DNA of 18,784 nucleotides from Oopsacas minuta (Eukaryota > Animalia > Porifera). Position 1 is the stretch's first letter. Each line of letters begins with the position of its first letter. The notes below the pieces were generated by a model that was given only the letters and a program-made list of their open reading frames with translations, had not been told where the DNA came from and made no database searches. The stretch lies in assembly GCA_024704765.1 (NCBI GenBank), contig JAKMXF010000070.1, forward strand, positions 18,959 through 37,742, read 5' to 3'. The position numbers and the translations under genes were made by a program. Positions 1 through 18,784 of the stretch are shown here, one piece after another.

Positions 1-748
1 CTCCAAAGAATTGTCAAAAGAGACCTGGGTTTATCCTCATTTAAAAAACATAAAGTGCACTATCTTTCAAAGGTAATGAAGGAGAAGAGGCTGAAGAGAG
101 GCAAAGGTCTCATTGACCGGTTCGCTATCCAAGGTCTTGATCATGTCTTGTTCTCAGATGAGAAATTATTTACAATATAGAGAAAGCTTATAATCAACAA
201 AACGACAGAATATTGTCTTCTACAGCGTCTACCATCCCTGAGGAATACAGATATGTAAAAAGAGTACAGAAACCATGTTCTGTTATGGTTTGGGCTGGAA
301 TATCTTCACTTGGCCGGACTCCAATAGTTTTCATCCCAACTGGGGTAAAAATAAATGCCCAAACTTACCAAAACCTTGTTCTAAAGCCTATAGTCAAAGA
401 TCTTAGCAAGTCGATGTTTAACAATGAACCCTTTGTGTTCCAACAAGACGGTGCCCCTGCTCATACAGCAAATACCACTCAAAGCTGGCTTCACTCCGAA
501 ATTCCTGACTTTATTTCCAAACAGGAATGGCCGCCATCTAGTCCGGCCTTAACCCTCTAGACTTCTCAGTTTGGTCTATATCACAAACAAAGTCTTGTTG
601 TAAATCCCATAAAAATTTGGAGGCCCTGAAGCGATCAATAATACGTGCTTGGAATGAAATCCCCCAGGAAACTATGCGAATAGCAGTAGAGGTGGTTCCT
701 TCACGACTTAGGGCTGTAATTAAGAAAAAAGGTGGATATATTGAATAA
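1..748 (+). pseudogene. DD37D transposase pseudogene
   Basis: Frame 1 reads LFSDEKLFTI. A 2-bp insertion near 176 shifts to VMVWAGIS...FQQDGAPAH...WPPSSP. A 1-bp deletion near 547 hides DLNPLD. It ends KKKGGYIE* at 746-748. There are 37 residues between the second and third Asp. Confidence 0.92.
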
Positions 749-871
749 GCCTAATATATTATTATCCAAGTAATGTGTACGTTATTGTGTGTTAAGATTT
801 TAAGTCATTTCAGTTAGTTTTGTCAAGATTATGACCTTTTATCTGTGGGACAGAACTTATGGGCCACCCTG
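1..871 (+). mobile_element. maT/DD37D (IS630-Tc1-mariner) DNA transposon, 3' part; 5' end lies outside the window
   Basis: Transposase remnant is followed by the right terminus ...gggccaccctg (871) and TA (872-873). Reverse complement CAGGGTGG is a typical maT terminus. Confidence 0.9.
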
Positions 872-889
872 TAGTAAAATATATATATG

Positions 890-1770
890 AATATGCTTTG
901 ACATTGGAAAATGACTGCAATAATTTGTATTGTTAGGTTTCAAAATTTCTATGCGCGAAATGTGAAGCTGACAATCAAATCTTTGTGTAGCTCAGGATTT
1001 CACTCTAAATGTGTTGCTATTGGAAATAGATTGTAATGTATCGTAGAGTAAAGTAATGCATTGAACATGTATTGACATTTGAAATTGACGGACAACAATT
1101 TGTGTTGCTCAGTTTCAGAATGTCTATGTTAATATTTAGTCACACAATTTCAAAGTGGCGATATGTGAAATTGACTGTCAAAAATTTGTATAGATAAGTA
1201 TTTCAATTAACATGTTCGCTAATAGAAATCGAGTGAAAAGTTTTGTGTAGTTCACTAATGCAAGTCATAAGTGTTGATATTAGATATTGCCTGACAGCCT
1301 TGTAAATAGTTTATTCACACAATTTCTAAGTAGTGAAATGTGAAATAGGAGTGTACAAAATTTCACCCAAAATTTCAAATTTCATCATAAGAATTGTGAA
1401 AGTGTATAATACAAAGTATTGTTACTGAAATACAAATGTCACAGCGTAGTCCTCAAATAATGTTCTATACATTGCATTTCACATAATTTCCAATCAAACA
1501 ATTAGCAAGTGAACAGTTGACCAATAGAAATATTTTATGTTCAATTCACTATTTCAACACAATCTTTTTGGAAAAGTATGCTATACAAAGTATTATCACT
1601 CAATTTCAAATGTCACAACATAGTCTCTAATATTGTTCTCTACACTACAGTTCACACTTTTTCAAATCAAACACTGTGGAAGTGAACAGCTGACAAATAT
1701 AAATATATCACATTCAATTCAGTATCTCAACACAATTTTTAGGAAAAGTATATTATGCAAAGTATTATAA
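890..1770. repeat. Diverged ~173-175 bp tandem repeat arranged as two oppositely oriented arms
   Basis: Right arm: aagt..atacaaagtatt..caaatgtcaca recurs at ~1400, ~1574 and partially ~1746. Left arm: tcacacaatttc.aagt.g.ga.atgtgaaat at 1140 and 1315, and tgacatt.gaaa.tgac at ~900 and ~1073. The latter are reverse-complement matches to the right-arm unit. Confidence 0.7.
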
Positions 1771-1910
1771 CCATAGATTCCTTTAGAGAAGGACTGGAAC
1801 GTCGCGATCTCGGGGTTTTTAACTTGAGTCTGAGAGGCTCCAATTACAAAATTGAAAAAGCATTAGAACCTATATTTAACTTATGGTTGGGGGCCAGGCA
1901 CAACCAAGAA

Positions 1911-1911
1911 N
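1911..1911. other. Probable collapsed assembly gap (single N)
   Basis: Sequence class changes abruptly at the N, from an unassigned open frame to a hAT transposase C-terminus. Confidence 0.7.
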
Positions 1912-2078
1912 TACGAATGAAGGACTAGAGTCTGTATATCTCGAAAAAATTGTTGAGTTTTCTATGTCCTTACCAGGGACATCAGCTGCTGTAGAGAGAG
2001 TATTCTCATTAATGAATAATATTTGGACAGACGATAAGGCGTGGCTCAGCATTGATTGCCTGGGGTCAATGCTATTTA

Positions 2079-2695
2079 CAGTCTGTTACATAATTATTTA
2101 GAATGGAGATGTTTTGTTACAAAAGCAACAACGAAGCATGTCCCAAAGATACAAGTGTGGGCTGCATTCTCATCTATAGGTACATTCCCATTGTGCTTTT
2201 TCACTAACAATATGAACAGTGAAATGTTTTTATATATAATGGAAGGATATTTGATAACTCAGGCACAAGTACATCATGAAAGTCACTGGCGATTGGTGAT
2301 GGATAATGATCCAAAACACACCTACAAAAGCTCTGCAACTGGTTGGCACAAATGTACCAAATCAGATTCCATGGCTTTCACAAAGTCCAGATCTTAACCC
2401 CTTTGGAAATTTATTCGCATGGGCGAAGCGAGAGATACTTTAGCTAGGCCCAAGGACAATTCCAGACCTGAAACTCAATTTAGAAGCGGTCTGGAATCGT
2501 ATTCAACCAGATTTTCTCAAACCTTACTGTGAATCAATGTCCAGAAGATGCCAGCTACTAGTAGAAGGCAACGGGTATCCTATTAATTATTAAGATCTAT
2601 TACTTCACTCTCAATTTGGGCATATATGGCAATGTATACTGTGACTTTAATAATTTTCGGCTTAAGTAACAATTCTAAATAAATACGTAACAGAC
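2079..2695 (+). mobile_element. Tc1-family internally deleted element
   Basis: TA(2077-78) + cagtctgttacataattatttagaat at the left. The right TIR attctaaataaatacgtaacagac (2672-2695) lacks the terminal TG and is followed by TA (2696-97). Confidence 0.85.
2105..2593 (+). pseudogene. Tc1 (approximately DD34E) transposase C-terminal half
   Basis: KIQVWAAFS...MDNDPKHT, frameshifts, then WLSQSPDLNPFGNLFAW (catalytic E replaced by G) ...NGYPINY* at 2591-2593. Confidence 0.88.
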
Positions 2696-3057
2696 TATAA
2701 AATGTAATTTCGATTTCTCATGCATGGAATTTTATAAACATATTTACAAAACAAAGAGCTTCTTAAGAAGTCACACTTTCTGAAAAATATGCCAAAAATC
2801 CCTATTATTAGCTGTTATAGTAGCCCACTTCTATATCTGTTTTTCGAAATCTAATTGTTACTTTGTAGTGAAGTAAACATACGTACACTATTTTAATATA
2901 TTCAATTGTTAGTAAATCTATCTTTCTATCACTCTTTACTACATCTGTTGTTAATAAATATATGCAGCAGAAGCTCGTTTAGATACTATTACCCAGTATT
3001 CAGTCAACATAATGCATTCATTATTGTGTTTTAGTAATTTTCAGGTATTTATAGTGT

Positions 3058-3166
3058 GTCCAGGATTTTGTCCAAGATTTTTACAATGCTGTCCAGGAAT
3101 GTCCAGGATTTTTTAAGAAAAAATGGAAATGTACAGGATTTTGATGAAAATCATCTGGTCACCCTA
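3058..3166 (+). repeat. hAT right subterminal repeats and 11-bp TIR
   Basis: About five (gt/ta)CAGGATTTT-like units followed by tggtcacccta. Confidence 0.8.
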
Positions 3167-3758
3167 ATTTAAAGGTACAACTAACAAATCTATAAACAGT
3201 CCAGCGATATATAGTTGTGTAACCTGTATAGTATCTTTGAGCTATCTAATAACTTGTAAACTCTGTAAGCGCTTTAATGATTATACGTGATGTAAGGCGA
3301 AAATGTAGGTCGTAATAGCGCATTCTTCCAGCTAATTCTTGTCCGAAAAGACTGAAGTCAGAAGGTTATGTATTTCATAATATACATCCATAGGTCAGAT
3401 TGTGTACAGTTGTTCCAAGTTGTCAAGTTCGCTATTGCCAATTAACTACGAAAAGCTCTCTTAGATACCATTCAATGATATATTTTATAGACAGATCTTG
3501 CAATGAAGCCAAAATATAGAATTTTTTCTCTAAAAATAGCATTTCTCATAAATCGACACGCTATGAGAACATTGGAGTAAATGAGCAATGTTAACTTTAA
3601 AACAATTATTATGTTCAAAACTAATAATATATGGAATCGATATTTTTTTATTCTGACGCAACCACCCGATCATGAAATTTGGAAATAGCAAATTCAGCTG
3701 CGATATTTCCTACCACTCTTCTTTAATACACCAACGTGCACTAGTAATCAAAGGGAAC

Positions 3759-4268
3759 ATGTCTAATGCTGAAAAGAATGTATTTTCTATGTTTGAAAGG
3801 TCACCATCGCTAGGTGATTGCAGAAGTATTGACTTAGGTATCCTCTAGCATCTTGCGAAATTAAGAGAAGAATTCTAGCAATATTCCACAGATAGAAGAG
3901 AAATGGATTTGGATTAGGTTAGTAATCCTTTTCATCCGAAAACTGAAAAGCAATTCGAGTTGCAAGATAAGTTTAATGATGTTATCATTGACTCAACATT
4001 TAATGTTTCACTTGAAAAGGAAGACTTAGAAACAGCCTTGTCCAGTATTTCTTCTCCATACCCATGAATCAGCAAGCATGTGTTGATATCATTATTATTA
4101 TTCCCAACTACTTACCTTTACGAATCTGCATTCTCAACTCTTTCTCCAATAAAATGCACTACCAGAAATCGTATTAATTTGGAAGATGAAATCCTTTGCC
4201 TAATTTCTAAACTTCAACCTCGAATCTCACTTCTGAGTCAAGAAGCACTATGTCAAGGCTGACATTAA
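3759..4268 (+). pseudogene. Buster/Charlie-type hAT transposase C-terminal remnant (ZBED5/FAM200-like)
   Basis: One frame with several stops: HLAKLREEF*QY...SNPF...LLLFPTTYLYESAFSTLSPIKCTTRNRINLEDE...KLQPRISLL...QG*H*. This matches the Buster-type FPTTYLCExxFS...RNRL...PxI...Q.SH ending. No TIR was located. Confidence 0.85.
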
Positions 4269-5101
4269 TTCTTATATCAGTTAATCTGTATTTCCTTTAA
4301 TTCTCCTCACCCATTCTTGATGGTTACTAGCAATAATTATTAATTAAACCTTTTTGGAAATGGTCCACTATAATATGGAATTGTATTTGCCGGCACAGTG
4401 AATATTTCCAAATGCATATAGTGAAATCCGTGTCGAAAGTAATTTAGAGTCTCGATATGTCTATTTCTTGACTCATCTATCCTCTAAGCGTCAAACAATG
4501 GGTTACTCGATAAAGTAAGTATACATTTTTTGAATCGAATGTCGCCACATTCCTGTCACATTTTGCGTTGCTAGTTAACAAATAATTTAAAAAATTACCT
4601 AGTGACCACTCAGACTATGGTAAATCTTTCAATGAGTTTGATTCAAACTGAAGGAGCTATTTGTATTTATTGGGTCAAAATATGCGCTTTAGAGTTGTAA
4701 GGTACAACTACACCTAATACTTAACAATTGGAATATAGTATTTTGTTAATCAATAAGTGCCATAATATGCACAAAAATCAATTATATTTGGAACAAGCTT
4801 CTTACACGAATGCTAGTTTCAACTTACTATTCAGTCCCTATAATTTAGATCCATTTGAACGAAATCTCATATCGAATGATTTCAAAACTAATCTCAGTGA
4901 ATACAATCTAGTCAAATCATTTTTGAGATATCTGATTTGATTACAGGCCTGATGTTTTACTTTTTGAGTGTCTCCTCAATTCGTGTAGCCACATAATCAT
5001 TGAGACCAGCAGCAATACAAATTTCTATATTTCTCAACATATCACTTTTTGAAATCCGTTTCTTAGAATCCTTATATATTCCTCCTTAATTTCTTCTCAA
5101 G

Positions 5102-6053
5102 GTACGCTGATGATATACAAATTTTAGAGGATCTCTATAGTGAAGTTGAGCTAAAAGCTATAGAAAACCAGAAAAAGAAAGTTCACATAGATTTGGAACT
5201 ATCTGCATTTGTTGATGAATTAAATGGTATTGATTTTTATAATAAAATTGTGGCTGAAGATCTACAATGTTTTTTAAGCTTTCCTGGAATGCTGGAGGTG
5301 TCAGAATTCTTTCGCGAAAAGGTTTTAACCAATAATAGAGAGTGCGCTATATATGGAATACGCGCACATGAACTTCGGGAAGGTGAGGCACAAGAATTCT
5401 TGAACTGTGTTAAAAGATTAACCGATGAAAATATACAATTATCTATTCAACTTATAGATTCTTTTAAAGTTACTCACAATCATTATGAGTTAGAGCTCAC
5501 AAACCTACGAGACGATATAATGGTGAATTCGCTTCTGAATGAAATGCGTAGAGGGGCTAGAGATATATTCAATTTATTGATCAAGAATGAAATGCAATTA
5601 GTAGATCAGATTGAACAAATATTTCAAGATTTCGAGAGAATGTTGAATGAAATGGTTATCCTGTTTTTGGAACAAATTCGTTTTTATATGACTGAGTGCA
5701 GAGATTTATCCCAAAAGTTTGCTGAAAAATTGAATGATATTGCAATGAATACTTTGGAAGAGATCAGCAAGGGTCAGTTAGAAACCGATCTCTCAGAAGA
5801 AATTTTGAGATTGTTGGTGGACAAGGACAATTTAGTCTCAACTTTGTCATCTTCACATGATTGTCATATGAGTACAATCGATAAAAAGGAAGATTATATA
5901 AATGTTGGCGTTAACAACTATGTCATGAAACTCTTATCTCATTTTTCCTCAGTTGAAACTGAGAGGAACAGATTGAGGATTGGAGAAATTGATAATCTTT
6001 ATGAATCCTTTACAGAATTGATCGATGAAATTGAAGAAAACCTTGATAAGTAG
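5102..6053 (+). CDS. DRC3: Dynein regulatory complex subunit 3 (LRRC48), 3' terminal coding exon
   Basis: Uninterrupted frame of 317 codons (stop included) after a pyrimidine tract and AG (5100-5101). The frame is closed upstream by TAG 5064-5066 with no ATG before the homologous region, so splicing is required. Recalled human DRC3 motifs align: AFVDELNG/AFVEHLNG, EMQLVDQIE/EMQLVEQLE, CRDL, LVDKD..V.....SHDCH...ID..ED/FVDKD..V...ASHDIH...ID..ED, RNRLRIGEI/RNRKRVKEI. Confidence 0.9.
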
Positions 6054-6547
6054 GGTTGCTTGATTGATTTTTACTAATGATAATCTTCAAAGTGTATGGC
6101 AGTATATACGAATCTATACATATCGGGGATAACTCGTACTAACTCAGCCAACCCATTTTGTAACTGATTTCCAAATAACCTTGATTTGCATTTTTGCTGA
6201 GATATGTAGCCACCTAAAGATTTCGAGAACGATCTAAAAATTATTTGAAATATTATGTCATTTCGTCCTTAAAACCTGAGAAATTTCTAAAAACCCCTTT
6301 GCATAAGGGCCCCGGTGTAATATGCCGATTTTATAAGAATATGCGAAATGTCAATAAATGCATAGATACTCATTGCACATTATGTTAAATACACTTCATT
6401 GCCCTATCATGCATGGTCTTTGAGATATTCGATACCCAAGGATGAATTTCCACTTTCCCCACTACAACTGAGTTTTCTCTACATTGCCCTACACCCTTGT
6501 GATTACATCATGAATGTTAACAATACTGATAGGTTTCAATCATACTA

Positions 6548-7851
6548 CAGGATGACACATGAATACTATTACAACTTTAAAACTACCATATTGTAGATGA
6601 ATATAATTCAATAGCGTTGAAACTTATCCACTATATTATACTACATATCTATTTTATCTCAATAAATCACACCAGCTATATCTCACTTAGAAGTTTTATT
6701 ATTTCAACATTTTGTAATGGAGACTCGTCGTTTAGTTGTTATTGAGTTATTCAAGCCGGAAAGTGCAGAAGTGAAATTGCCTCTTTGCTCAGTTACAATA
6801 GGATGTTTATTTCGCGAACTTTGTCACAGTTTGCTGATACAGGAGACGTGTTAGACCCGACCACGACCTGGCCGTCCAGGTAGTGCACGGAAAATTTCTT
6901 TAACCAAGAGGGTGCTACACGGATTAAACGAAATCCCGCCCGAAGTATCCGAATAATGGCCATTGAAACAAATACACAGAGAATCGATGCGGAGGCTTGT
7001 TTGTAATGATTTGGGCATGAAAGCGTACAAAATGAAAAAAAGACAACTCCTCACAGCCAAAAATAAGAGTATGAGATTGGGAAGATGCAAGGCTATGCTT
7101 TCACGTTTCACCAATGGTCGACACAAGCAAATCCTTTTCTCTGATGAGAAATTATTTACTGTTCAGCAGGCCCTAAACAAGCAATATCATATGATTTTAG
7201 CCACAGATAACAGTACTTTGCCAGAATCTACTTTCCAGGTATCTAGAACGCAGAAACCAGCTTCAGTGATGGTATGGGCCGGGGTTACTGCAACTGGTCG
7301 GACACATTTGATCTTTATCCCCCAAGGTGTGAAAATCAACCAATCGGTTTATCGGGAATCAATTCTTGGGAATGTTTTGAAGCCTTGGGTACAATCACAT
7401 TTTGGAAACGACCTATGGGTATTCCAGCAAGATTCTGCCCCAGCTCACAATGCTAAAGCCACTCAAATGTGATGCAAGACCATTTTTCCGGGGGTTATTT
7501 TTCCGAAGAGTGGCCACCTTGTTCGCCAGACTTTAACCCCCTCGACTTTTCTATATGGTCCATATTGGAGGAGAGGTTTAACGCTACACCCCATCGTTCA
7601 GTTTCGGTTCTTAAGAGTACATTATTAAGAGAGTGGTCAAAGATTCCGGATGAGCATGGGTGTGCCAGTGTAGACTCCTTCATCGTTCGTCTGAAGAGCT
7701 GCATTAAGGCAAAACGCAATATATTTGAGTAATACTTTCTTAATTTTCAACCCTATAGCATATCTAAACAATTTAGAATATTAGAACGATAGCTCCAATA
7801 GTTTTGTTTTCAGCCCTTTTATATTTGTAGCAGTATTTATATGTCACCCTG
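6548..7851 (+). mobile_element. Full-length maT/DD37D transposon (1304 bp)
   Basis: TA(6546-47) caggatgacacatgaatact ... agtatttatatgtcaccctg TA(7852-53); 17 of the first 20 TIR bases match. Confidence 0.92.
6717..7732 (+). pseudogene. DD37D transposase pseudogene
   Basis: METRRLVVIELF start, RPRPGRP after frameshifts, LFSDEKLF, VMVWAGV, FQQDSAPAH, TGA stop at 7470-72, WPPCSPDFNPLD, NIFE*. Several frameshifts. Confidence 0.92.
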
Positions 7852-8373
7852 TATGTAGTTTTCTTTCTAGAGTTTTAGGCTTATAAATTGGTTATTTCCT
7901 AGATATTTGCAAAATCTGGCTATTTTATTATTAGACAGAAATGGTACAGTTTCATAAAATTTGCTCCAATCCTATTTGATTAGTTAGGCAGCGGCCAATT
8001 TCTTATAAGTAAATTATATTTTGTGGATACCTTCATTGTCAATTTACACTAGAGTTTCGCTAATACGAACACGGTTAAGGGATACAAATTAGACCACATT
8101 ATCGGTCCCATTTGATGCCTTTTCAATCTAAATTAGTTCGCATAACTCGCACTCTGATTATGGGGTAATATTTTGTCATTTCTTTGGTGCACTTATTAAT
8201 TGGAGTCTACTGATGAGGCATATTTCTGGATTTAAATAATAGAAACAAAGGAGAGGAAGGTGAATCGCATTTCGGAATTTGGATTGAATTATTTTAGGCT
8301 TAGCTTTGATTACCTCTTCTTTTGTTTCACAGATATTTGTGAACACATTGGAGTTTATCAACAACATCTACTA

Positions 8374-9594
8374 CCGGTGTTCATTAAGTTCTGATCACTA
8401 CCCCCAAAAGTAACCAAAGGTATATTGTACACAAACTATCAATGTTAATTTTTTTCGAAAGGCTAGTCACCGTTATTTAGACAGCGTTGAAGACGTTCCA
8501 ACCAGTGCACAAAATATTTTATAGTCTTCCGACGGGATCCGTTTTGATACTGGAGAATCGCCCATCCCAGTTCTGCGCTTTTGCCAAAAATGACGACCAG
8601 AGAGGTATTCCTTAAGCTTAGGGAAGAGATAGAAATCACAAGAGCAAGATCTGGGCTGTAGGGTGGATGTTCAGGTTCAATCATCCCCATCCTTAAGAGT
8701 TTTTCTTTAACTTGCTTGGTTTTGTGAAGTCGGAAATTATCATATAGTAATCTCAACTGTTTAGCACCAGTCCTTTTTCTCCTCTTCAACAAGCTTTCTT
8801 CTACTGCACCAAGACAATTACTCATATAGAATCTTCGAGTAAAGTTTGTACCTTTGGAACTATCACCTGGGCCACTGGTCCATCTGCATCAAGAATATGC
8901 AATACATGATCCTCGATGGTCTGAAATCTGGACGCGGTATCATTGGAGGGTCTGAGTGCTTCCTATCCACACCTTATTTGTTTGTTTGGAAAAGGGGTGT
9001 TATACTGAACCCATGTCTCATCACCAGTCACAATCTCAAATATTCTTCGCGGGTCGCATTCTTTGTAGGATTTCTGGAGATTACGACAACATCTTACCCT
9101 TGTCTCTTTTTGGGCCTTTGTAAATAAATGTGGGACCCATCTGGCACAAACCTTCGTCAACTTGGCTATGATCTTAAAATGTGGTCTACATTTTCCATCA
9201 AGATGCCAACACTATTGGAAAGTTCTCTGATAGTTATCTGTGGGTCTAGGTCTATCAGTTTCTTGATAACGGACGATTTAATGGGAGATACAGCCGTAAT
9301 TGGTGCTCCAGGCCGGGGTCATCGTCCATAGACTTTCTTCCCAGCCTGAAACTTTGAGCCCATCATCTGACTCCTGCATAAGATAGACCACCTTTTGTAG
9401 TATAGACTTGAACCCAATCAAGATGTATCTCGTGTGAAACTTTCCCTAGGAGAGTACGAATCTTGACATAAACTCTTTGCTCGATTATAGGATTCTTGCC
9501 AAGTGATGTCATAAATGTAAAGTATAAAAGACACCTGTTGTATAATTTGAGATAACTTGTTGAGTATTTAAGCCATAATGGTTAAATCAATACT
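8374..9594 (-). mobile_element. mariner (DD34D) element lacking its own 5' TIR
   Basis: TA(8372-73) + ccggtgttcattaagttctgatcacta is the presumed 3' terminus. No reverse-complement partner was found upstream of the ATG. Confidence 0.8.
8463..9512 (-). pseudogene. mariner transposase pseudogene
   Basis: EQRVYVKIR, VCARWVPHLFT, IVTGDETWV, LLYDNFRLH, HPPYSPDLAL(C)D with 34-residue spacing. Contains stops and frameshifts. Confidence 0.92.
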
Positions 9595-9918
9595 AAAACG
9601 TTCGATTCATCTATATATTGCGGCTTTCGAAGGAGATTCATCACCGTCAATATCGTGCATTTCACGAAGAATGTATGAGCAGTCTTCCCTTTTTTCCACA
9701 GGTACCAAATTATTTGTCGTTTTTCCTTTGCTAAAATCCATTAGTTGAAAAGTAGCCTATACTATTGAAACTTTATACTGAAGAATATGCTAGTAGGGTA
9801 AAGATTATATTGTATCGAAGTTAGACAAACAAACTTGTAATCCGATATTTGGCTTAGAGCTGTATTAACTAGAATATGAATTTGATTCATGGTCTCATTA
9901 CTTATTAGACAGCCCTTG
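9595..9918 (-). mobile_element. 5' end of a second mariner family
   Basis: Minus strand starts TA caagggctgtctaataagtaatgagac. ATG at 9741 gives MDFSKGKRQIIWYLWKKGKTAH../ILREMHDIDGDESPSKAAIYR*IERF (mariner N-terminal HTH). Similarity is lost near 9595. Confidence 0.75.
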
Positions 9919-9920
9919 TA

Positions 9921-10697
9921 CCTGTTAATTGTCAAAATCACTGTGAATATGTGGTTACATTTGAGATTCATTGCAAATTCCTCCTAGAAGACATTATCAA
10001 GTATAGTGTGGATAATATGGGTACATATATTCGAGAATGAACATGTCTCACGTGATATTTACTTTTAATATGTGCTTATAGTAGGACGTGCAACCAGATT
10101 CTTCAGTAAATGTTTTTGTATACATATATACACGCTGACACTGTTTTGTAATTGGTTTATGCACTAGAATTTCTATTGTATTCAGATATTCACAGAAATT
10201 ATGACTTGTATCTAGTTTTGGCATTCACTTGCAAATGTTTGCACTTGTTCACCGTGATACTGAACAGTAACAGGTATCTTCACTAGAATTTCTACTGTAT
10301 GCACATTTTTACAATAACAATGACTTATAACAGGCTTTTCACTATATTCTCTACTGTTAGCTTATATTCTTATTAAATATTGCTTTTAATCGTTATTTTA
10401 CTCTAAGATCTACTGAAAGCACAAATTTATAGTAACTATGACTTGTATCAGGTCTTTTCACAATAATATCCACTGTAAGCACATATTCACTGGAACTATC
10501 ATTTGTTATAGCTATTTTCACTACAATATCTACTATGGGCCCCTAGTCACTATGACTTTCAACAGCTTTCTTTCATTGGAATATCTACCGTAACCACATA
10601 TTCACACTGACTATAAATTCCAACTGACTTTTGCATTTAATTACTATTATCCGCACTTATCCACAGTGACACTGACTTGAATCAGGTTTATTTAATA
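9921..10697. repeat. Diverged ~58-60 bp tandem array with an internal orientation switch
   Basis: Forward units resembling tttcactagaatatctactgtaagcacatattcacagtaactatgacttgtaacagg run from ~10140 to 10690. About three reverse-complement units lie at 9921-10090, e.g. tgtgaatatgtggttac near 9943 versus gtaaccacatattcaca near 10590. Confidence 0.75.
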
Positions 10698-10699
10698 TA

Positions 10700-11008
10700 C
10701 AGTCTGTCAAGATGAAATAGAGACTTTCGTGTAATTGTGTATATTTCAGAATTTCTTCATTTGCTGTGGTTAGATATGAAACGCATTTGTTTTCTAATTC
10801 ATTTATACATGTATATCAAGTTATCATTAGTTAATTGATTCTAGAATACACGAATAACCTATCAGTCTGTCACTTAGAATACACATTCCCGAAACTATCT
10901 GCTATATTCCTATAGACCGCTCCAATATCTGTTTTTGGCTCATATTTGTATTTGTGTCGAAATACAAAATCAGCATGGTGAGTTAGAACGAAGAGACCTC
11001 ATCCGCAA
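10700..11008 (+). mobile_element. Probable left end of a Tc1/mariner-superfamily element, cut by the gap
   Basis: TA + cagtctgtcaagatgaaatagagact terminus. A possible frameshifted start MVS(L)ERRDLIR lies just before the N. Confidence 0.5.
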
Positions 11009-11009
11009 N
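11009..11009. other. Probable collapsed assembly gap (single N)
   Basis: The transposon ends on either side of the N have non-matching termini. Confidence 0.65.
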
Positions 11010-11168
11010 CTCTAATTAGAAATATTTGTTAGTAATAGAGAGAATGCTTTAGTACTTCAGTAAACATACATCAATATAGATTATGGGCCTATAAGGTTTC
11101 AATTATTCCACTATAGCTATGTATAATTGATTGTCAAACTATGGGACAGAACTTTTGCCGCACCCTTG
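11010..11168 (+). mobile_element. Terminal fragment of a maT-like element
   Basis: tgggacagaacttttgccgcacccttg + TA (11169-70) resembles the terminus tgggacagaacttatgggccaccctg at 846-871. Confidence 0.55.
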
Positions 11169-12174
11169 TATATTAGTGTGGGTTTATCTGTACTTTAGGA
11201 ATGACCTCAATACTTCTTTAAATATGAATTCTTGTTACTATTAAGCACTGGAATATTTTTAACATTTAGTCGTATATACTTATAACTTGTAAGTTATTAT
11301 GTTTATACTATGAATCCTGACAAGATGTTGCTCAGTATGAAACACAGATCCAAGGAGTTGATACAAGATCATTACTTCTAGTGGATAATGAATTAGGTTT
11401 GTTAAGCCGCTATTGAGGAAAGAAATAAGCTTTAGTTAATAAACGTAGATAAACCTCCACTAAATCCAAGTTCAGGAATCAGAGACCACAAGAATCCCTA
11501 TTTATTTTGTTGATGAACAAGTTCGAGTTGCTACTATTATAGTCCCAACGAGTTAAACAATTACTGAAGAATTTCATGACCACCACTGCCTATCAGAAGT
11601 CGCAAACGATATTGGGAGCAAAAGGTAAGCTTGTGCCAAGAGGACACGAACTAATGTACACTGGCTAGGCCCTCACAAAACTAAGCTAGCTTAGTTTGTA
11701 TTACAAAGGATGAAGGTGTATAATAATTCCACAATTGCACCACTAATTCCATCTTCTCTCTCAGTTAATGTTATGTGCGAGCGTGTTAGCATAATAAATT
11801 ATAGGTATTATTGATATTTATTTATCATATCGATGAATCGTTATATTATGGTATAATCCTGAATCTATGAACAGGGGGGCCGTATTCACTAAGCGTAGTT
11901 AAACCGTATTCACTAAGATTGGTATTCACTAAGATTTAAGCTCATACTTAAGTATGTACTTAAGTACAAAAGTTAAGTAAGCTACCGAGGTTGCGTAAGT
12001 TATTCAAGCACTATTTTAAGTTTCCAAATATTATATTTATCGATAACATTAATGTAATCACTTCATTCACTCGTTTTCTTTGATTAATTCATACTTTCAC
12101 TACAAAATTTGATTTTCTATGATGTTACAATATTACTAAATCGTATATCTAAAGCTACTGCTGTTGATCTTTTT

Positions 12175-12917
12175 CTAAAAGTCTTTGCTTTTTATGACGG
12201 TAAACTCCCTCTGCTTTTCAATCAGCTGTAGTTGAGCTGAGAATACTTCCATCTGCTTAAGGACCACTTCTCGTTGCAGAGGAAGTAAATCAGAGACCTT
12301 TGTTGACTGTTCGATGCTCCCGTTACGCCTACGCCTTCCCTCTGGACGACTATTAACTACAGTAACTCCTGGTCCCTCAAACACTGGCGTTACTTCACTG
12401 CTTTCGCTAATCTCGGTATGTGAAGGCAATGCTGTTGGGGCTTGAAACATATAAATACTACCACATGTTCCAGTGAACGCTGGCGTACTTGAGGACATCT
12501 GTGATACTCTCTCCGTCACAGATGTGGACAATTCCCTATCCGAGCTAAGGATCCGGATGCTTTCATCCTCCACTTCACCAGCTTCATTTGGCCCTCCTCC
12601 TGTCCTCCTCGCTTCCCTTCGACTGGAATCCACGTGGGCTTTTGCGAACCTTTTAGATTGTTCCGATTCTTTTATATCTTTCACATCTCGGTTGTTGCCA
12701 TGGATAGAATTGATTTTCTTCATAACGTTGTTCCAAAGCCTCGTATTTTTTAAATTTATTTCCGCGCACTGACCTGCAGTACTTCTCACTATATCTCCAG
12801 CATCCTGGATTGTCTCAATGAGTGTATTCTCTTCCTCCTTTGTCCAATTTACTTTGGACCTTTGTCCTTATTCTTGCTTTGGAATATCAATAACCTCCAC
12901 CAATTTATAGTTTTCAT
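12175..12917 (-). pseudogene. Harbinger Myb/SANT-like DNA-binding protein
   Basis: RSKVNWTKEEENTLIE...RLWNNVMKKINS...RDVKDIK...RRTGGGP and a C-terminal coiled-coil-like LQREVVLKQMEVF. A stop at 12868-12870 lies near the N-terminus; the frame is open from 12867 to 12175. Confidence 0.8.
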
Positions 12918-13098
12918 AATGCAATAACTAGCTCCCAATTCTAGTGCGATACTTGATGTTTCTCATAAGTAAATATCCCAACTTCAAAGATCAACATTCT
13001 GCTTAGAGGTTTCAAAACTACAATTTCCATGTAACCTTACAATCACTAACTGTGCGAAATGTTTATACATCTACATTACAACATATATCTATGTGAAT

Positions 13099-14139
13099 TT
13101 AGTTGCTGAAATTATGAATAGAAAATTGATTGCTGTAATGCTTTGATGCCAAATGCCCAACAGTTTCTTCAAAGTCAAGAACATCATCCGGATAAGAATC
13201 ATCGGAGACTTCATCCTCTAAAAGAGGTTGTTCCCACTGTATGCTATGTTATGCAATACTGCACAAGCAACTATGATGGAACAAATTTTATCTAGACTCA
13301 TCCTGAGCTCTCCATGAAGACAGTAGAATTTTCGTTTCCATCGCCCAAATGTCTGTTCAACAATTACCCTTGTCCTTTTATGTGCATAGTTGTGGTTAAT
13401 TTGAGGAGTGGTTATTGGTTGACGATAAGGAGTGAGTAAATATGGTCTCATCATGTAACCACGATCTCCTAATATATGCTACCCTATTGAAAAGGTATTT
13501 TTAACATGCATCCCAACTACTGAAACCTTCCAAATCCTTGAATCGTGAACAGACCCCGGAAAACGTACCAATACATCACAAAACATTCCATCTGGTTGGT
13601 AAATAGCTTGGACGTTAATTGAGTGGTAAAAATTCCGATTTATATAATCTGCTTCATCCTCAGAAGGTTTTTGGATTCGTATGTGTGTTCCATCAACTAA
13701 TCCAACTACTTCTGGAAAGTGAGCAATCTCATAAAACTTGTTTTTGATTTCTACCCTCTTGAGACCAGCAGGCAGACTATCAAACTGATGGTATACAGCT
13801 TGCAAACCCGAGAAACATCTCGGATATAACGAGAGGGAGAAGCTTGGCTTACCTTTATTCCATCTCCACAAATTATCTGGAACGTTCCAGAAGCGAAAAT
13901 TGAAGTGCCACATAAACTTGCAAGTGGGGGAAGCAGCATAAAACGCTTGGTGAAATTCAATTAGTTAGCTATCAACTCTGTAATTTTAGATATTGAAACT
14001 CTAGAGAAACGGAAACGTCGAACAAGTTCCATATCATCATAACAATCTAGAAGATCATTAAGATCCCTGAAAATCATTGACTTGCCATTGAGGAAGATAT
14101 TTCTTCTTGTGCGAGAAATAATGGAATCATCCATGCCAT
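13099..14139 (-). pseudogene. Harbinger DDE nuclease (HARBI1/DDE_Tnp_4-like) pseudogene
   Basis: FRDLNDLLDCYDDMELVRRFRFSRE, VVGLVDGTHIRI, YHSINVQAI, FPGSVHDSRIW, ILGDRGY..PYLLTP, RVIVEQTFGRWKRKF, CAVLHN. Several frameshifts. Confidence 0.92.
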
Positions 14140-14797
14140 TTGTTTATATTAGAATACTTGAATATTTATGTATTATACTTGGTCATAAATTGTATTTAGC
14201 TTAACATTCATTAGTACACCATGGAATGTATAATTCAGAATGATATTATTTAACATTACATACAAAGTAATGCATTACTTAGTAACACATGTTATATAAT
14301 AAGCGTTCGAGGTATTCCTTGTAACATTATTTATGAAGTATTTCATGAACATAACCACAATATTATAGTGAGATCATTTATAACATGAAAAGTTTGAAAA
14401 TATATTCCTGAATGATTAAAAGTAATTCTACAAAGCAATCCATCAGAAACTCACAAATTCATGAATATAAATGATACTAAAGTATCTACTTAACTAAGTA
14501 TGCTTAGTGAATGCGGCGGAAGATCTTTTTTTCCAAATCAGCACCTTCTTATATTGCTGTCTTCCATTTCCCCCGCCTCTCTTTTGTCTGAATTCATGCT
14601 TCAAACTGGATTAGCACTCAACAAATATCTCGTTTTTCTGAAATTAGGAAAAATAGAGCTTAGCAAATATAATCAGTAGAACTTGCTGGTTTTTCAGGAT
14701 ATTTTACTTTTAGTGCAAGTATTCAAAACTGTCTTTAGAAAATTAGGCATTAACCGAGTTTATTTTATGTTTTTAAAATCTTAATTTTCTTCCTATA

Positions 14798-16106
14798 CGA
14801 GGGGCACTCGAAAGGTTTTTCGTTTATATACTTATATAATAGGTATTACATATTATATGGTCACATTTTTTCAAAATACTCGTCCTGACACTCTATACAT
14901 CTTATCATTCGTTTAACCAGGTATCAAAGCACATTTTCCATTCTCCTTTAGGTTTCTCCCCAATTGCTAAGAAAAGTGCCCCGGTCAACTCTTCATTGCT
15001 GAAATATCTCCTCCCACGAAGTTGATCTTTCAGCTTTGGGGATAACCAAAAATCGCAAGGGGCTGGATCTGGGCAGTAGAGTTGGGTGGGGTAGCGTTCA
15101 GATCCTAGATATCTCTAAAAACTCACAAGTTCTTAGTGCTGTATGTGATGAAGCATTATCGTGGTGAAGCAGGATTCCTCGGACACCCGACTTCTCACGT
15201 TGTTTTCTGATAGCACTGAATACTTTGAGAAGACATATTGTGGTATACCAATCCGCGGTGACTGTCTTCCTATCCTCAAGTGCAATTCCTTCAACAAATT
15301 TACTACGTCTAAAGAAAATCGCCCGCATTTGCTTTCCGACTGATCTAATTCTTCGAACCTTTGTTGGAGGTAAACCACCTTCTTCGACCCACTCCTTAGA
15401 TCGTCTCTTCGTTTCTGGAACATAGTGGTTTGTCCATGTCTCATCGCCTGTGAGTATTTCAGAAACAGCTCTAGAAGTTCCATTAACAAATCTTTTAAGC
15501 ATAATTTTGCAAAAGTCCACTCGGCACTTTTTCTGATCAGACGACAAAGAATGCGGGATCCAACGAGCACATAACTTTCTAAGACCGAGCTCTTTATGTA
15601 AGATGACGTTTATACTCCCCGATGACAATTTGGTTTCCTGTTCTAACTGAGCGTAAGTAACATGAGGGTCTTTTGTTACTTCGTCCAACACCAGCTCTAC
15701 ATTTTGCACCGTTTGTATAATACTGGGCCTACCAGGACGGGGACCATCTTCAAGAATAAAATTTTTATGAATAAACTCTGAGTACCATCGCTCTACTGTT
15801 CTCAGACAAGAGCTGTATTTGGGAAGTGCTTCTGCAAAGTTTCGTGTATTTTCAGACTGGCTCTCCTCAAGTTTAAACAAAATTAAAATCATCGCTCTAA
15901 AATCGCGTCTTGTGAAGTCAGATTCTGGTTGAGGAATCATACAAGCCATAGCTTTTAGAAATCAAGCAATTCGAAAAGTACAAAAGATAAACTGATGAAA
16001 TTTGCTGTGTAGGTAAATAATATGCGTCTAAATATATATGAAATACTTTTATTAGAAAATACTTGTGGTTTAGTAACAAACGACAAAACTTTTCGAATGC
16101 CCTTCG
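14798..16106 (-). mobile_element. Full-length mariner element (1309 bp)
   Basis: TA(14796-97) cgaggggcactcgaaaggtttttcgt ... acaaaacttttcgaatgcccttcg TA(16107-08). Confidence 0.93.
14861..15949 (-). pseudogene. mariner DD34D transposase pseudogene
   Basis: 283 codons are open (RPGRP, LCARWIPHSL, ILTGDETW, LLHHDNASSH) up to a TGA at 15098. Then, after a frameshift, HP..YCPDPAPCDFWL...YFEKM*. Confidence 0.93.
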
Positions 16107-16788
16107 TAGTATTTTTGGCAGTATATCTCCCATCCTAATCGGGATTTGGCATCTAGGGAATTTCCTCCATTTGCTAAAAACTACTCCTTAATTAATATCG
16201 CAAAATCATACATAAGATCTAAACGTAACTTGTGGTTTTTAACTAGGGATTTGACAGCTGATGTAACGAATTGTTCTTGATTACTACTTAGTGCATTTAA
16301 TAAGTTCGTCTCAAAAACAATTTTGCTCTACATGTTAAAATATATTTGGCCTTTCATTTACTACTTTGTTATTCTGAATATTTATGACTATCTATGTTTC
16401 AACTCTTGTTCAGACTCTAGTTCGGTAAAATCTATCAATTCGTTTTTGGCATTAGCTAATTTGTCATACGCATTGAAACAATTTTCCAATAATCCATTAT
16501 CTGAATCAAGTTTGAAATCAAGAATCAATTAGCGATTTTTGATTTGATGGAGTCATAGCGTTGATTTGACATGACCTTAGGAAAGGCTCACGATTATTTT
16601 GACTCCTCGAATAATGTCACTCTGTTTTCCATAATATTTGGGGAAATACGTATGTAGTAATGCACGATTTGGGCGATTACATAAAGTTATCATCGGGAAA
16701 TCTTCATGATATTCAGAGGAAGCAGATTGATTTGGGAAAGGTTTATACTTGCCTACTCCTAAATATGATTATCTAGGAGCATCTAAAG

Positions 16789-16883
16789 TAAGGTGACCAT
16801 TGTACAGGATTTTGAGATTTTTTCTAAGATTTCCAGGATTTTGATTTGTACAGGATTTGTCCAGGATTTCGTTTCTTGTCCAG
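16789..16883 (+). repeat. hAT left TIR and subterminal repeats
   Basis: TIR is 10/11 identical to the reverse complement of 3156-3166. tgtacaggattttga at 16801-16815 is identical to 3130-3144. Confidence 0.8.
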
Positions 16884-17076
16884 CATGAGTATTTTGGGAA
16901 ATATTGGAGAAATTTCCTAGAAATATGTCAATTTTATGTCAATTATATTCTCATGGTACCCAGGAAATCTGTTGTGGGGGGAGTTGCCCAAGTAGTATTA
17001 ACCTAGGTATTATTTATCCATTTTGAAGTATCTTTTTATGTTTTATTCCAACTATTTCAGCTATTTATGCTTTATT

Positions 17077-17701
17077 ATGGCTTTGGATGAGCAAGACTAT
17101 CAATGTTTGGGAACTAGTAAGCGATTAAATGATAAGATAATCAATTCTTACTTGAACCTTGTGGAAGAAATTGACCCACAATTATTTAATGTTTCAATAC
17201 CTTTTTTTACTTCTCTTCAATCTCTCGGCCTTGATCATGTTACTTCATATAGCTGGGTAGATGGTTTGAAGTCTGCTGGATTATCATACCTTATTTTGCC
17301 GATCTTTTCTCAGAATCACTGGGCTATAGCTCTATTCTCGATCATATTTACTATCTTCCTCTTTTATGATCCTCTTTGGTATGTCCGCAAGTTTTAACAA
17401 GTTCAACACTATATTGATGGAATTTGTTGAAAAGGTATTTACCTATCCTTTCTCAGGTTTTACTCTTTGGTTTGAGCACATGCTGGTACAGAATAACATC
17501 TATAATTGTGGTGTTTTGATCTTACAGCTAGCAAAACGGTTTTCTTCTAACTTACATCGAGAATGTAATTATTTTGATATTGAGAATTCATCGGAATTTC
17601 TAAGAGGACAAATGCTCAGTGAATTAAAGACACGGACACTTGCTTTTACTGTGCTTTCTGATTCACAAGATTATATAGAACTTCCTATCGAACAATCATA
17701 A
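17077..17701 (+). pseudogene. Ulp1/SENP-family (peptidase C48) SUMO protease domain
   Basis: RLNDKIINSYLNL, ILPIFSQNHWAIA (His), FYDPL (Asp), VQNNIYNCGVLIL (oxyanion Gln and Cys). One extra T near 17376 splits it into the two listed ORFs. Confidence 0.88.
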
Positions 17702-17782
17702 GATTGTACGGAATTTCCTATCGAGCAATCACAAGATTATACGGAATTTCCTATCGAGCAATCACAAGATTATACAGAATTT
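17663..17782 (+). repeat. 33-bp coding tandem repeat (SQDYTEFPIEQ), ~3.6 copies
   Basis: Units start at 17663, 17696, 17729 and 17762. In unit 2 the CAA codon has become TAA. Confidence 0.95.
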
Positions 17783-17800
17783 TCTTTAGAAAAATATGAT

Positions 17801-18784
17801 ATGGTTCAATTAAACATAGGTGGTAAAAGGGCACACTGTACATTTAGCACAAGTTTACTGGTTAAGTATCCCTTTTTGGCCACCGTTGGTAATGGTAGAT
17901 TGAAGTTTAAGAAGCGCTTTGGAATTTTCCAGTTCAATATGAAGGAAACTAAGCAATATGGAGGCATATGAAATCTAAAAAACATATGGCTACTCTTAAT
18001 ACCAGTTCTCAGAGTCACACCCTAACAAAATTCTGTGACTATGGATCTAAAATTGGCAGCTAACGAAGCAACTTGGTCCTTTCACACAATAGAGTATAAT
18101 CAAACCTTTAGATCAATGGATTGTACTTCTCAGTTACTTCGTAATTATTTTAATCGGAATTTAATTGTGCTAGGACTAAATTTGGGGCTATTGTCAACAA
18201 TGTTCTTGCACCTTATTCTATTTCCCTTTGTTCTGTTGATTTAAAAGTCGCTAATTATATTTCTCTATATACAGATCAATCGAATCATGATGAAATTAAT
18301 TGTTTGCCAATTCTGGTACGATATTTTCTAAAAAGGTATGGAACTTGTGTAAGAATTATTGATTTCAAATCAATTCCTGCAGAAACATCCGGTGTATTAT
18401 GTGACACTTTTTGTGTACTATAAAACGGCATTGTATCGAATCCAAAATCATAGCCCTCTCTGCAGACAATACTAATACCAATTTTGGAGGTGTTCACAGA
18501 AAGGGTAAAAATAATCTACACTTTAGATTGAAAGATCAGCTGAATCAAAATATTTTAAGCATCGGCTGTTCTGTCCACATAGTTAACAACACAATACAAA
18601 CAGCAGTTGATGTTCTTCCTATTGAATTAGATGCTGTTATACAAAAAATCTATTCTTTCTTCTACATTTACACTATCCAAGTAGGATCATTGAAACAATT
18701 CTGTGATGAAGCTGATATAGAGTATAAAAAGCTCCTCGGATACAGTAAGACAAGGTGGCTATCTCTTCTACCTGCAATTGAAAG
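17801..18784 (+). pseudogene. hAT transposase, N-terminal and catalytic regions
   Basis: GKRAHCTFS..LLVKYPFL, degenerate BED-like finger (..RHMKSKKH), TFRSMDCTS, CARTK, SLYTDQSNH (first Asp), SADNTNTNFGG (second Asp), IGCSVHIVNN, YSKTRWLSLLPAIE. Several frameshifts and stops. Confidence 0.92.

Follow-up and report, generated by a model that had tools for sequence, protein, structure and literature searches.

A protease domain inside a hAT element

Can a DNA transposon of the hAT superfamily carry a SUMO-protease-like domain as part of its transposase gene, and if so, to what end? The question is raised by an 18,784-nucleotide stretch of Oopsacas minuta contig JAKMXF010000070.1 (the window), in which positions 16789-18784 are the left part of a decayed hAT element with a Ulp1-type (Peptidase_C48) domain ahead of the transposase. 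The window copy is dead, and its family is multi-copy in this sponge. As detailed below, the family has a single gene of ~850 codons, encoding a C48 domain (~190 aa, at the initiator Met), an acidic linker (40-60 aa, predicted to be disordered), a basic KRR…FPFL segment, a putative BED-like C2H2 finger, a DDE core and a hAT dimerisation domain, in this order. The left arm has the following features:

16781-16788, plus strand: 8-bp flank ATCTAAAG abutting the left terminal inverted repeat (TIR); half of the presumed target-site duplication (TSD), compatible with nnnTAnnn
16789-16799, plus strand: left TIR TAAGGTGACCA, an 11-mer with one mismatch to the family sequence TAGGGTGACCA
16800-17079, plus strand: 5' subterminal stretch, untranslated; carries GTACAGGATTT / GTCCAGGATTT motifs (16802, 16848, 16859)
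17080-17394, plus strand: N-terminal half of the C48 domain, from the ATG at 17080 (MALDEQDY… to …LFYDPL, 105 aa, frame of 17080)
17381-17698, plus strand: C-terminal half of the C48 domain, followed by the start of the acidic linker (frame of 17366)
17663-17794, plus strand: four 33-bp tandem units (11 aa each) within the linker, where a TAA at 17699-17701 replaces the CAA of the neighbouring units
17795-17925, plus strand: end of the linker (…NIGG) and N-terminus of the transposase (KRAHCTF…KYPFL, decayed zinc finger), sharing the frame of the C-terminal C48 half
17926-18784, plus strand: body of the hAT transposase with the second half of the zinc finger, the regions of the first and second Asp (YTDQSNH and ADNTNTNFGG) and TRWLSL, truncated by the end of the window

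A one-base frameshift near 17380 splits the C48 domain, leaving the catalytic His (17317-17319, in QNHW) and Asp (17368-17370, in FYDPL) in the N-terminal half and Gln (17489-17491) and Cys (17507-17509, in VQNNIYNCG) in the C-terminal half. From the latter, the frame continues unshifted through SLEKYDMVQLNIGG and KRAHCTFSTSLLVKYPFL, the start of the transposase, to 17925. A sequence-only reading of this DNA had placed a Ulp1 domain with retained His, Asp, Gln and Cys between the left TIR and the transposase, had taken the single TAA for a CAA variant within a tandem repeat and had described the C-terminal C48 half as in frame with the transposase N-terminus; our annotation bears out all of these points. 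Further downstream, the transposase is broken by at least four frameshifts (near 17925, 18030, 18150 and 18409) and several stops, and both Cys of its zinc finger are lost.

Pfam searches with seven pieces of the window gave nothing relevant, the decayed C48 halves being undetected on their own. The N-terminal half alone, however, matched the catalytic domains of SENP1 (best match, E-value 5e-5), SENP5, SENP2 and yeast Ulp1 in the PDB, with an alignment spanning the His-Trp and Tyr-Asp motifs; for the C-terminal half alone we found no PDB relative. The N-terminal half is also 55% identical to residues 1-105 of P0076, a natural open reading frame (ORF) from a related element. The PDB match and the intact relatives together certify the identity of the domain. 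On the transposase side, the last 124 codons (18411-18782) are 77% identical to P0021, an ORF from another related element, and the segment KRAHCTF…KYPFL has homologues in GAS-KRRLTKF…FPFL of P0076 and in the N-termini (M-x-KR…FPF) of relatives from arthropods.

Related elements read through from protease to transposase

A HMMER search with the N-terminal C48 half against 1.84 billion representative proteins yielded 19 matches, none of which was a hAT fusion; fragments among them led to the loci L001, L002 and L005. At L001 we found an isolated C48 fragment with no transposase nearby. L002, in contrast, is a complete element (1114-7228) with TAGGGTGACCA at both ends and a perfect 8-bp TSD, GATATAAT; it contains a C48 domain (1674-2410) and an intact 594-aa transposase (5057-6841). 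A search with this transposase retrieved P0076, a 478-aa ORF with PF02902, whose identity to residues 1-232 of the L002 transposase is 98%. The locus of P0076, L003, is a complete 3,512-bp element (5439-8950), again flanked by a perfect 8-bp TSD, TTCTAAGA, and with the 11-bp TIR TAGGGTGACCA at either end. Its frame is free of stops from the initiator Met of the C48 domain via …TSQTGAS into KRRLTKFTPALNSNFPFL… and the zinc finger. L004, whose ORF is P0021, represents a third lineage and is 74-80% identical to the window in DNA; in P0021, the frame extends from the C48 Cys box (…NNGFDCGVFILQVAKRF…) across another acidic linker to KRRLASF… and continues for 592 codons. L002, L003 and L004 come from three other assemblies.

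Although L002 and L003 are 98% identical, L002 carries a 2,631-bp insert (2370-5000) exactly at the junction of protease and transposase. Since this insert is bounded by inverted ends (CTTCGATCGAAA) and an 8-bp duplication, CCTCAA(G/A)G, of its own and encloses a Harbinger-type DDE fragment, it is a nested transposon and not an intron. It contains arrays of a 29-bp palindromic unit (2700-3100 and 4080-4220) and a Harbinger-type DDE_Tnp_4 ORF (3251-4012). An intron between the two domains is thus rejected, L003 having a continuous ORF. A separate C48 insertion is rejected as well: neither termini nor a TSD surround the C48 segment, and one TIR pair and one TSD enclose the whole element.

The three lineages, at ~50-60% protein identity, have a common domain order and frame, which indicates that the uninterrupted ORF is ancestral. 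The near-identity of L002 and L003 further implies that their recent ancestor had one ORF of ~850 codons. The sequence-only reading had proposed an ancestral polyprotein of protease, repeat, BED and DDE domains. Its core holds, as L003 and L004 join protease, linker, zinc finger and DDE transposase in one ORF without a fixed stop or intron between the domains; the repeat does not, being confined to the lineage of the window. Junction-spanning ORFs are rare in the protein collection, since searches restricted to the C48 part of P0076 or to that part of P0021 which covers the junction recovered nothing beyond the queries. In the ESM Atlas, C48 and FAM200/ZBED5 proteins formed separate clusters and we found no combined one.

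In the genome of the window's organism, the C48 segment and the transposase segment have a similar multi-copy depth. We mapped contigs from four sequencing runs on positions 14800-18784. Word depth in the unique flank (16130-16794) was ~30-58 in three runs, while the depth over the element summed to ~85-240 and was even from the 5' region through C48 to the transposase. This evenness points to several related copies (≥90% identity) that carry the C48 domain about as often as the transposase. The run contigs gave no joints within the element that would be candidates for splice sites or deletions. A loose contig end represents a sister copy that retains both zinc-finger Cys codons lost in the window. 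The fourth run, X4, had a depth of 0-6 on the unique flank as against 68-275 on the hAT element, including exact-match contigs at 44-51.

The transposase belongs to a Buster-type clade

The ends of the elements are those of a hAT, with the 11-bp TAGGGTGACCA at both ends of L002 and L003 and 8-bp TSDs on both sides of each; the window shows one end per arm of the element. Three of four flanks, including the TSD of L003, fit the pattern nnnTAnnn, which is the target preference of Buster-type hATs.

Within the protein, 25 of 28 aligned family members match Dimer_Tnp_hAT (PF05699), whereas P0020 alone scored 15.8 bits, below the Pfam cutoff of 21.4. Likewise, a comparison of P0020 alone to solved structures found none, but the family profile matched the Hermes transposase (E-value 6e-6) over a C-terminal region that includes …AaxER.FS. 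The columns of Asp137, Asp201 and Glu532 are conserved in the family alignment, as is a C-x2-C…H-x4/5-H pattern in the alignments, for which no Pfam zf-BED match was obtained.

Over its full length the transposase is 38-47% identical to proteins of ~620-630 aa from insects, ticks, spiders, snails and fishes, some of them named FAM200B-like or "HAT C-terminal dimerisation domain-containing", and its Atlas neighbours are clusters of the FAM200/ZBED5/GTF2IRD2 type. The family is thus a member of the FAM200/ZBED5-like (Buster-type) hAT clade. Among the 120 transposase matches listed, PF02902 was present only in P0076, an ORF from a sponge assembly. The protease-less relatives start at M-x-KR…FPF…, exactly where the sponge linker ends, from which we conclude that protease and linker were joined in frame upstream of the original start of the transposase. 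On where the relatives start, a mixed MAFFT alignment (A1) was informative; as it misplaced cellular C48 domains, it was excluded from folding.

The protease is a bare SENP-like catalytic core

In contrast to the decayed halves in the window, the C48 domains of the relatives are recognized by Pfam PF02902 (cutoff 20.7 bits), with 35.7 bits for P0076, which covers positions 2-205 of the 217 in the Peptidase_C48 model, and 37.9 bits for a piece of L002. In sequence comparisons, the C48 domain of P0076 matched SENP5 (E-value 4e-14) and Ulp1 (E-value 4e-12) with the His, Asp and Cys columns aligned. An AlphaFold model from a 23-row alignment has a predicted local distance difference test score (pLDDT) of ~90 for residues 1-195, with residues 196-262 disordered. 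The best Foldseek matches to this predicted model were SENP5, SENP3, SENP1 and Ulp1, with E-values down to 1e-12 and template modelling (TM) scores, by target, of up to 0.8; the NEDD8 protease DEN1/NEDP1 was matched as well, with a TM score of ~0.7. The hAT-borne domain is a bare catalytic core without the N-terminal targeting regions of cellular SENPs, and its catalytic residues are kept across the three lineages. The equivalent of Ulp1 Trp515 is also present (NHW).

Constraint and origin of the protease

The linker has 39-58 aa, and both its length and its sequence vary by lineage, yet it is always acidic (isoelectric point 4.1) and rich in Ser and Thr. The 33-bp repeats occur only in the lineage of the window; in the other lineages the acidic linker is non-repetitive.

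Nonsynonymous divergence (dN) is 0.27-0.37 for the C48 domain and 0.29-0.42 for the transposase, and higher for the linker. The ratio of nonsynonymous to synonymous divergence (dN/dS) is ~0.16-0.41 (C48), ~0.14-0.19 (transposase) and 0.3-0.7 (linker). These values allow qualitative statements only: dS is saturated, and the alignments derive from tblastn high-scoring segment pairs, which are biased to conserved parts. Judging from these rates, the C48 domain is under constraint similar to that of the transposase, indicative of purifying selection during the divergence of the family.

A maximum-likelihood tree groups the hAT-borne C48 domains in one clade (support 97/93), with the C48 domain of L005 as its sister (support 98/95) and also as their closest relative by identity (38%). 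L005, from a sponge-associated assembly, is a decayed locus (5962-9209) that carries, on one strand, a C48 domain, four copies of a ~27-aa unit, a FLYWCH finger (45.7 bits) and a transposase fragment of the Mutator-like element (MULE) type, which at 24.1 bits falls just below the cutoff. Given the sister relationship between its C48 domain and those borne by hATs, one protease lineage stands upstream of transposases of two superfamilies. Other named C48 matches were cellular SENP1/Ulp1 proteins of microsporidia and yeasts.

What might the fused protease do?

The best explanation of these observations, and in our judgement a probable one, is a family of fused protease-transposases whose tethered deSUMOylase counteracts silencing. 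The zinc finger of the transposase, together with putative binding sites in the subterminal regions, would bring the protease to the element ends and to chromatin. There, it might strip SUMO or a related modifier off the transposase itself or off repressors bound to chromatin, and could in this way counteract SUMO-dependent silencing and favour expression and transposition. The GTACAGGATTT / GTCCAGGATTT motifs of the left arm recur in the right arm described below (3058, 3101 and 3131) and near the ends of L002. With the protease covalently tied to a DNA-binding transposase, an element of 3.5 kb and natural ORFs for both halves, this role is directly testable.

Several points weigh against this explanation. 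The tethering of a deSUMOylase to the element's own DNA is a function that we infer. No single copy is intact over the ~850 aa, the full ORF being deduced from two copies that are each broken elsewhere, L003 by two late frameshifts in the transposase and L002 by a break in C48 and the nested element. In the active site, the position of the oxyanion Gln, which is Gln in L002 and the window, is Leu in P0076. Further, Arg replaces the equivalent of Ulp1 Trp448 in the window (17122-17124), L002 and L003 (residue 14 of P0076), while the position stays Trp in the MULE-linked sister and in most other C48 domains and cellular SENPs aligned. In the Ulp1-Smt3 structure, Trp448 and Trp515 presumably form the tunnel for the Gly-Gly motif, with Trp448 as one wall; if so, SUMO may not be the substrate. 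The estimates of constraint are qualitative, as noted, and the C48 tree was built without the SENPs of the host sponge, so that capture from the host and exchange between transposons are indistinguishable in it. Finally, the depth pattern of run X4 would fit transcription of this or an identical copy, but is a hint only, as the kind of run is not on record.

A broader version of this proposal, which we put forward tentatively, is that the hAT and MULE elements of sponges each placed the same SENP-like lineage at the N-terminus of a transposase. The result would be a deSUMOylase targeted to DNA, its Gly-Gly tunnel altered from Trp to Arg, which strips SUMO-dependent repressive marks from the element's own chromatin, an animal counterpart of plant VANC/KIU anti-silencing that is built into the transposase.

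Among the alternatives, the one that fares best, while still unlikely, is that the C48 domain is a captured host or transposon fragment without a role, carried along solely for the start codon that it lends to the fused ORF. Many transduplicated transposon fragments are non-functional and the function of transposon-borne Ulp1 domains is still unknown (PMC13317346); the loss of one tunnel Trp would fit as well. A fragment without a role is, however, difficult to reconcile with a complete catalytic domain (His, Asp, Gln, Cys) that was kept across lineages ~50-60% identical in protein, or with a dN that does not exceed that of the transposase next to a linker that evolves much faster.

Marginally less likely still is a self-processing polyprotein, in which C48 would cut the fusion at the end of the linker and free a transposase with the ancestral KRR… N-terminus. 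Clan-CE proteases of adenoviruses, poxviruses and Polintons set a precedent for polyprotein cutting. The three lineages have small residues before the basic N-terminus (…NIGG|KR in the window, …TGAS|KRR in L003, …VKGS|KRR in L004), the protease-less relatives start exactly at this site, and the change from Trp to Arg in the tunnel could loosen the requirement for Gly-Gly. Yet the junction is not conserved as Gly-Gly, and SENP/Ulp1 proteases recognize the whole SUMO fold, whereas no ubiquitin-like fold precedes the site. In the AlphaFold model, moreover, the linker is disordered (pLDDT <50) and undocked from the active site, and the nearest relatives of the domain are SENP1/3/5 and Ulp1 rather than viral proteases.

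The same architecture could also act on another substrate, NEDD8, ubiquitin or a protein that is not ubiquitin-like, in place of SUMO. The Arg at the Trp448 position, common to all hAT copies and absent from the MULE-linked sister and cellular SENPs, and the Foldseek match to DEN1/NEDP1 would agree with this, but the best matches in both sequence and fold are SENP5, SENP3, SENP1 and Ulp1, and we deem it improbable. A chance juxtaposition, be it a separate Ulp1 insertion or a host pseudogene beside a hAT transposase, or two genes with an intron, might be entertained from the window alone, where the domain is broken and frame agreement has a one-in-three chance, but is refuted by the continuous ORF in L003 and L004, the single TIR pair and TSD, the like arrangement in three diverged lineages and the lack of termini around C48, and has a negligible probability.

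Comparison to other transposon-borne proteases

The fusion described here extends transposon-borne SUMO-type proteases to the hAT superfamily and to one of the earliest-branching animal phyla. Zisupton elements carry Ulp1-like proteases. Ulp1/C48 domains are further known from MULE and CACTA elements (PMC2528002, PMC13317346, PMC12903978), from active plant TIR elements (PMC12973397) and, as a C48 peptidase, from Crypton elements of oomycetes (PMC3212892). Unrelated transposons (MULE, CACTA, Crypton and Zisupton) have thus repeatedly acquired Ulp1/SENP domains. In the full-text literature, with Repbase and Dfam outside the scope of our search, we found neither an N-terminal C48-hAT fusion nor an animal case.

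The nearest functional parallel is KIU (Kaonashi) and VANC of Vandal MULEs, which carry Ulp1 and are reported to relieve silencing within their own family, although what the Ulp1 part contributes is not known (PMC13317346). Here too, a DNA transposon has long kept an Ulp1/C48 domain, joined to a protein that recognizes its own family. The plant elements, however, are non-TIR MULEs with Ulp1 on an accessory gene, whereas in the hAT element C48 is the N-terminus of the transposase ORF. CACTA-ULP and MULE-ULP of grapevine, rice and melon differ in their plant CACTA and MULE transposases, and the survey that describes them reports no hAT case. Crypton elements resemble the present family as a transposon class with an Ulp1-like protease (PMC3212892), but Crypton and Zisupton elements use a tyrosine recombinase and a Zisupton transposase, respectively, and their protease is often a separate protein.

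hAT domains and C48 do occur together in one predicted protein in cotton (Zf-BED-DUF-Dimer_Tnp_hAT-Peptidase_C48, classes IX and XI), but in these gene models C48 lies C-terminal to the hAT domains, and all that they document is the order of the domains, with neither element ends nor copies nor signs of selection (PMC9296551). The FAM200/ZBED5/GTF2IRD2-like hATs have the same N-terminus (KR…FPF…C-x2-C…H-x4-H) and share the invariant Asp, Asp and Glu columns, but are ~620-630 aa long and start at the KR segment.

L005 most resembles the family in layout, with C48 upstream of the transposase on the same strand and a tandem-repeat linker next to it; it differs in its MULE transposase with a FLYWCH finger and, as the copy is decayed, an in-frame fusion is only a possibility there. 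The protease lineage shared by the two points to domain exchange between hAT and MULE elements.

The right arm and the surroundings of the element

The window contains a second part of a same-family hAT element, far upstream of the left arm:

1883-3166, plus strand: hAT right arm with the C-terminal dimerisation region (…AVERVFS…), nested Tc1/mariner-like insertion at ~2078-2698, right TIR at 3156-3166 and flank ATTTAAAG at 3167-3174

The right TIR is an exact match to the family 11-mer TAGGGTGACCA, and the arm is 80% identical to positions 2159-2380 of L004. Its flank matches the one before the left arm (ATTTAAAG and ATCTAAAG, respectively) in seven of eight positions. The order of the arms is right end, 13.6 kb of transposon-rich DNA, left end, and the arms share no content, a layout that could have arisen by tandem duplication or by an aberrant (alternative-ends) hAT transposition.

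Within the right arm, a short Tc1/mariner-like insertion (2075-2701 with its ends) splits the C-terminal region; it encodes a DDE fragment and ends in 30-bp inverted repeats (2075-2104 and 2672-2701) that are 90% complementary. Just upstream of the truncated arm lies a tandem array with a period of ~174 bp (1135-1771), and a second array at 10163-10690 has 57-nt units spaced by ~59 or 118 bp. A Harbinger/PIF-type DDE_Tnp_4 fragment (13479-13913, minus strand, 58 bits) is adjoined by a 204-aa ORF (12175-12789, minus strand) that has no Pfam match and is possibly the second gene of that element. Finally, a mariner-type element within 14800-16129 contains a 283-aa ORF (15098-15949, minus strand) with weak matches to the Mos1 helix-turn-helix and to Transposase_1. 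Its summed contig depth of ~700-17,000, compared to ~34 in the unique flank, marks it as a member of a very abundant family in this genome.

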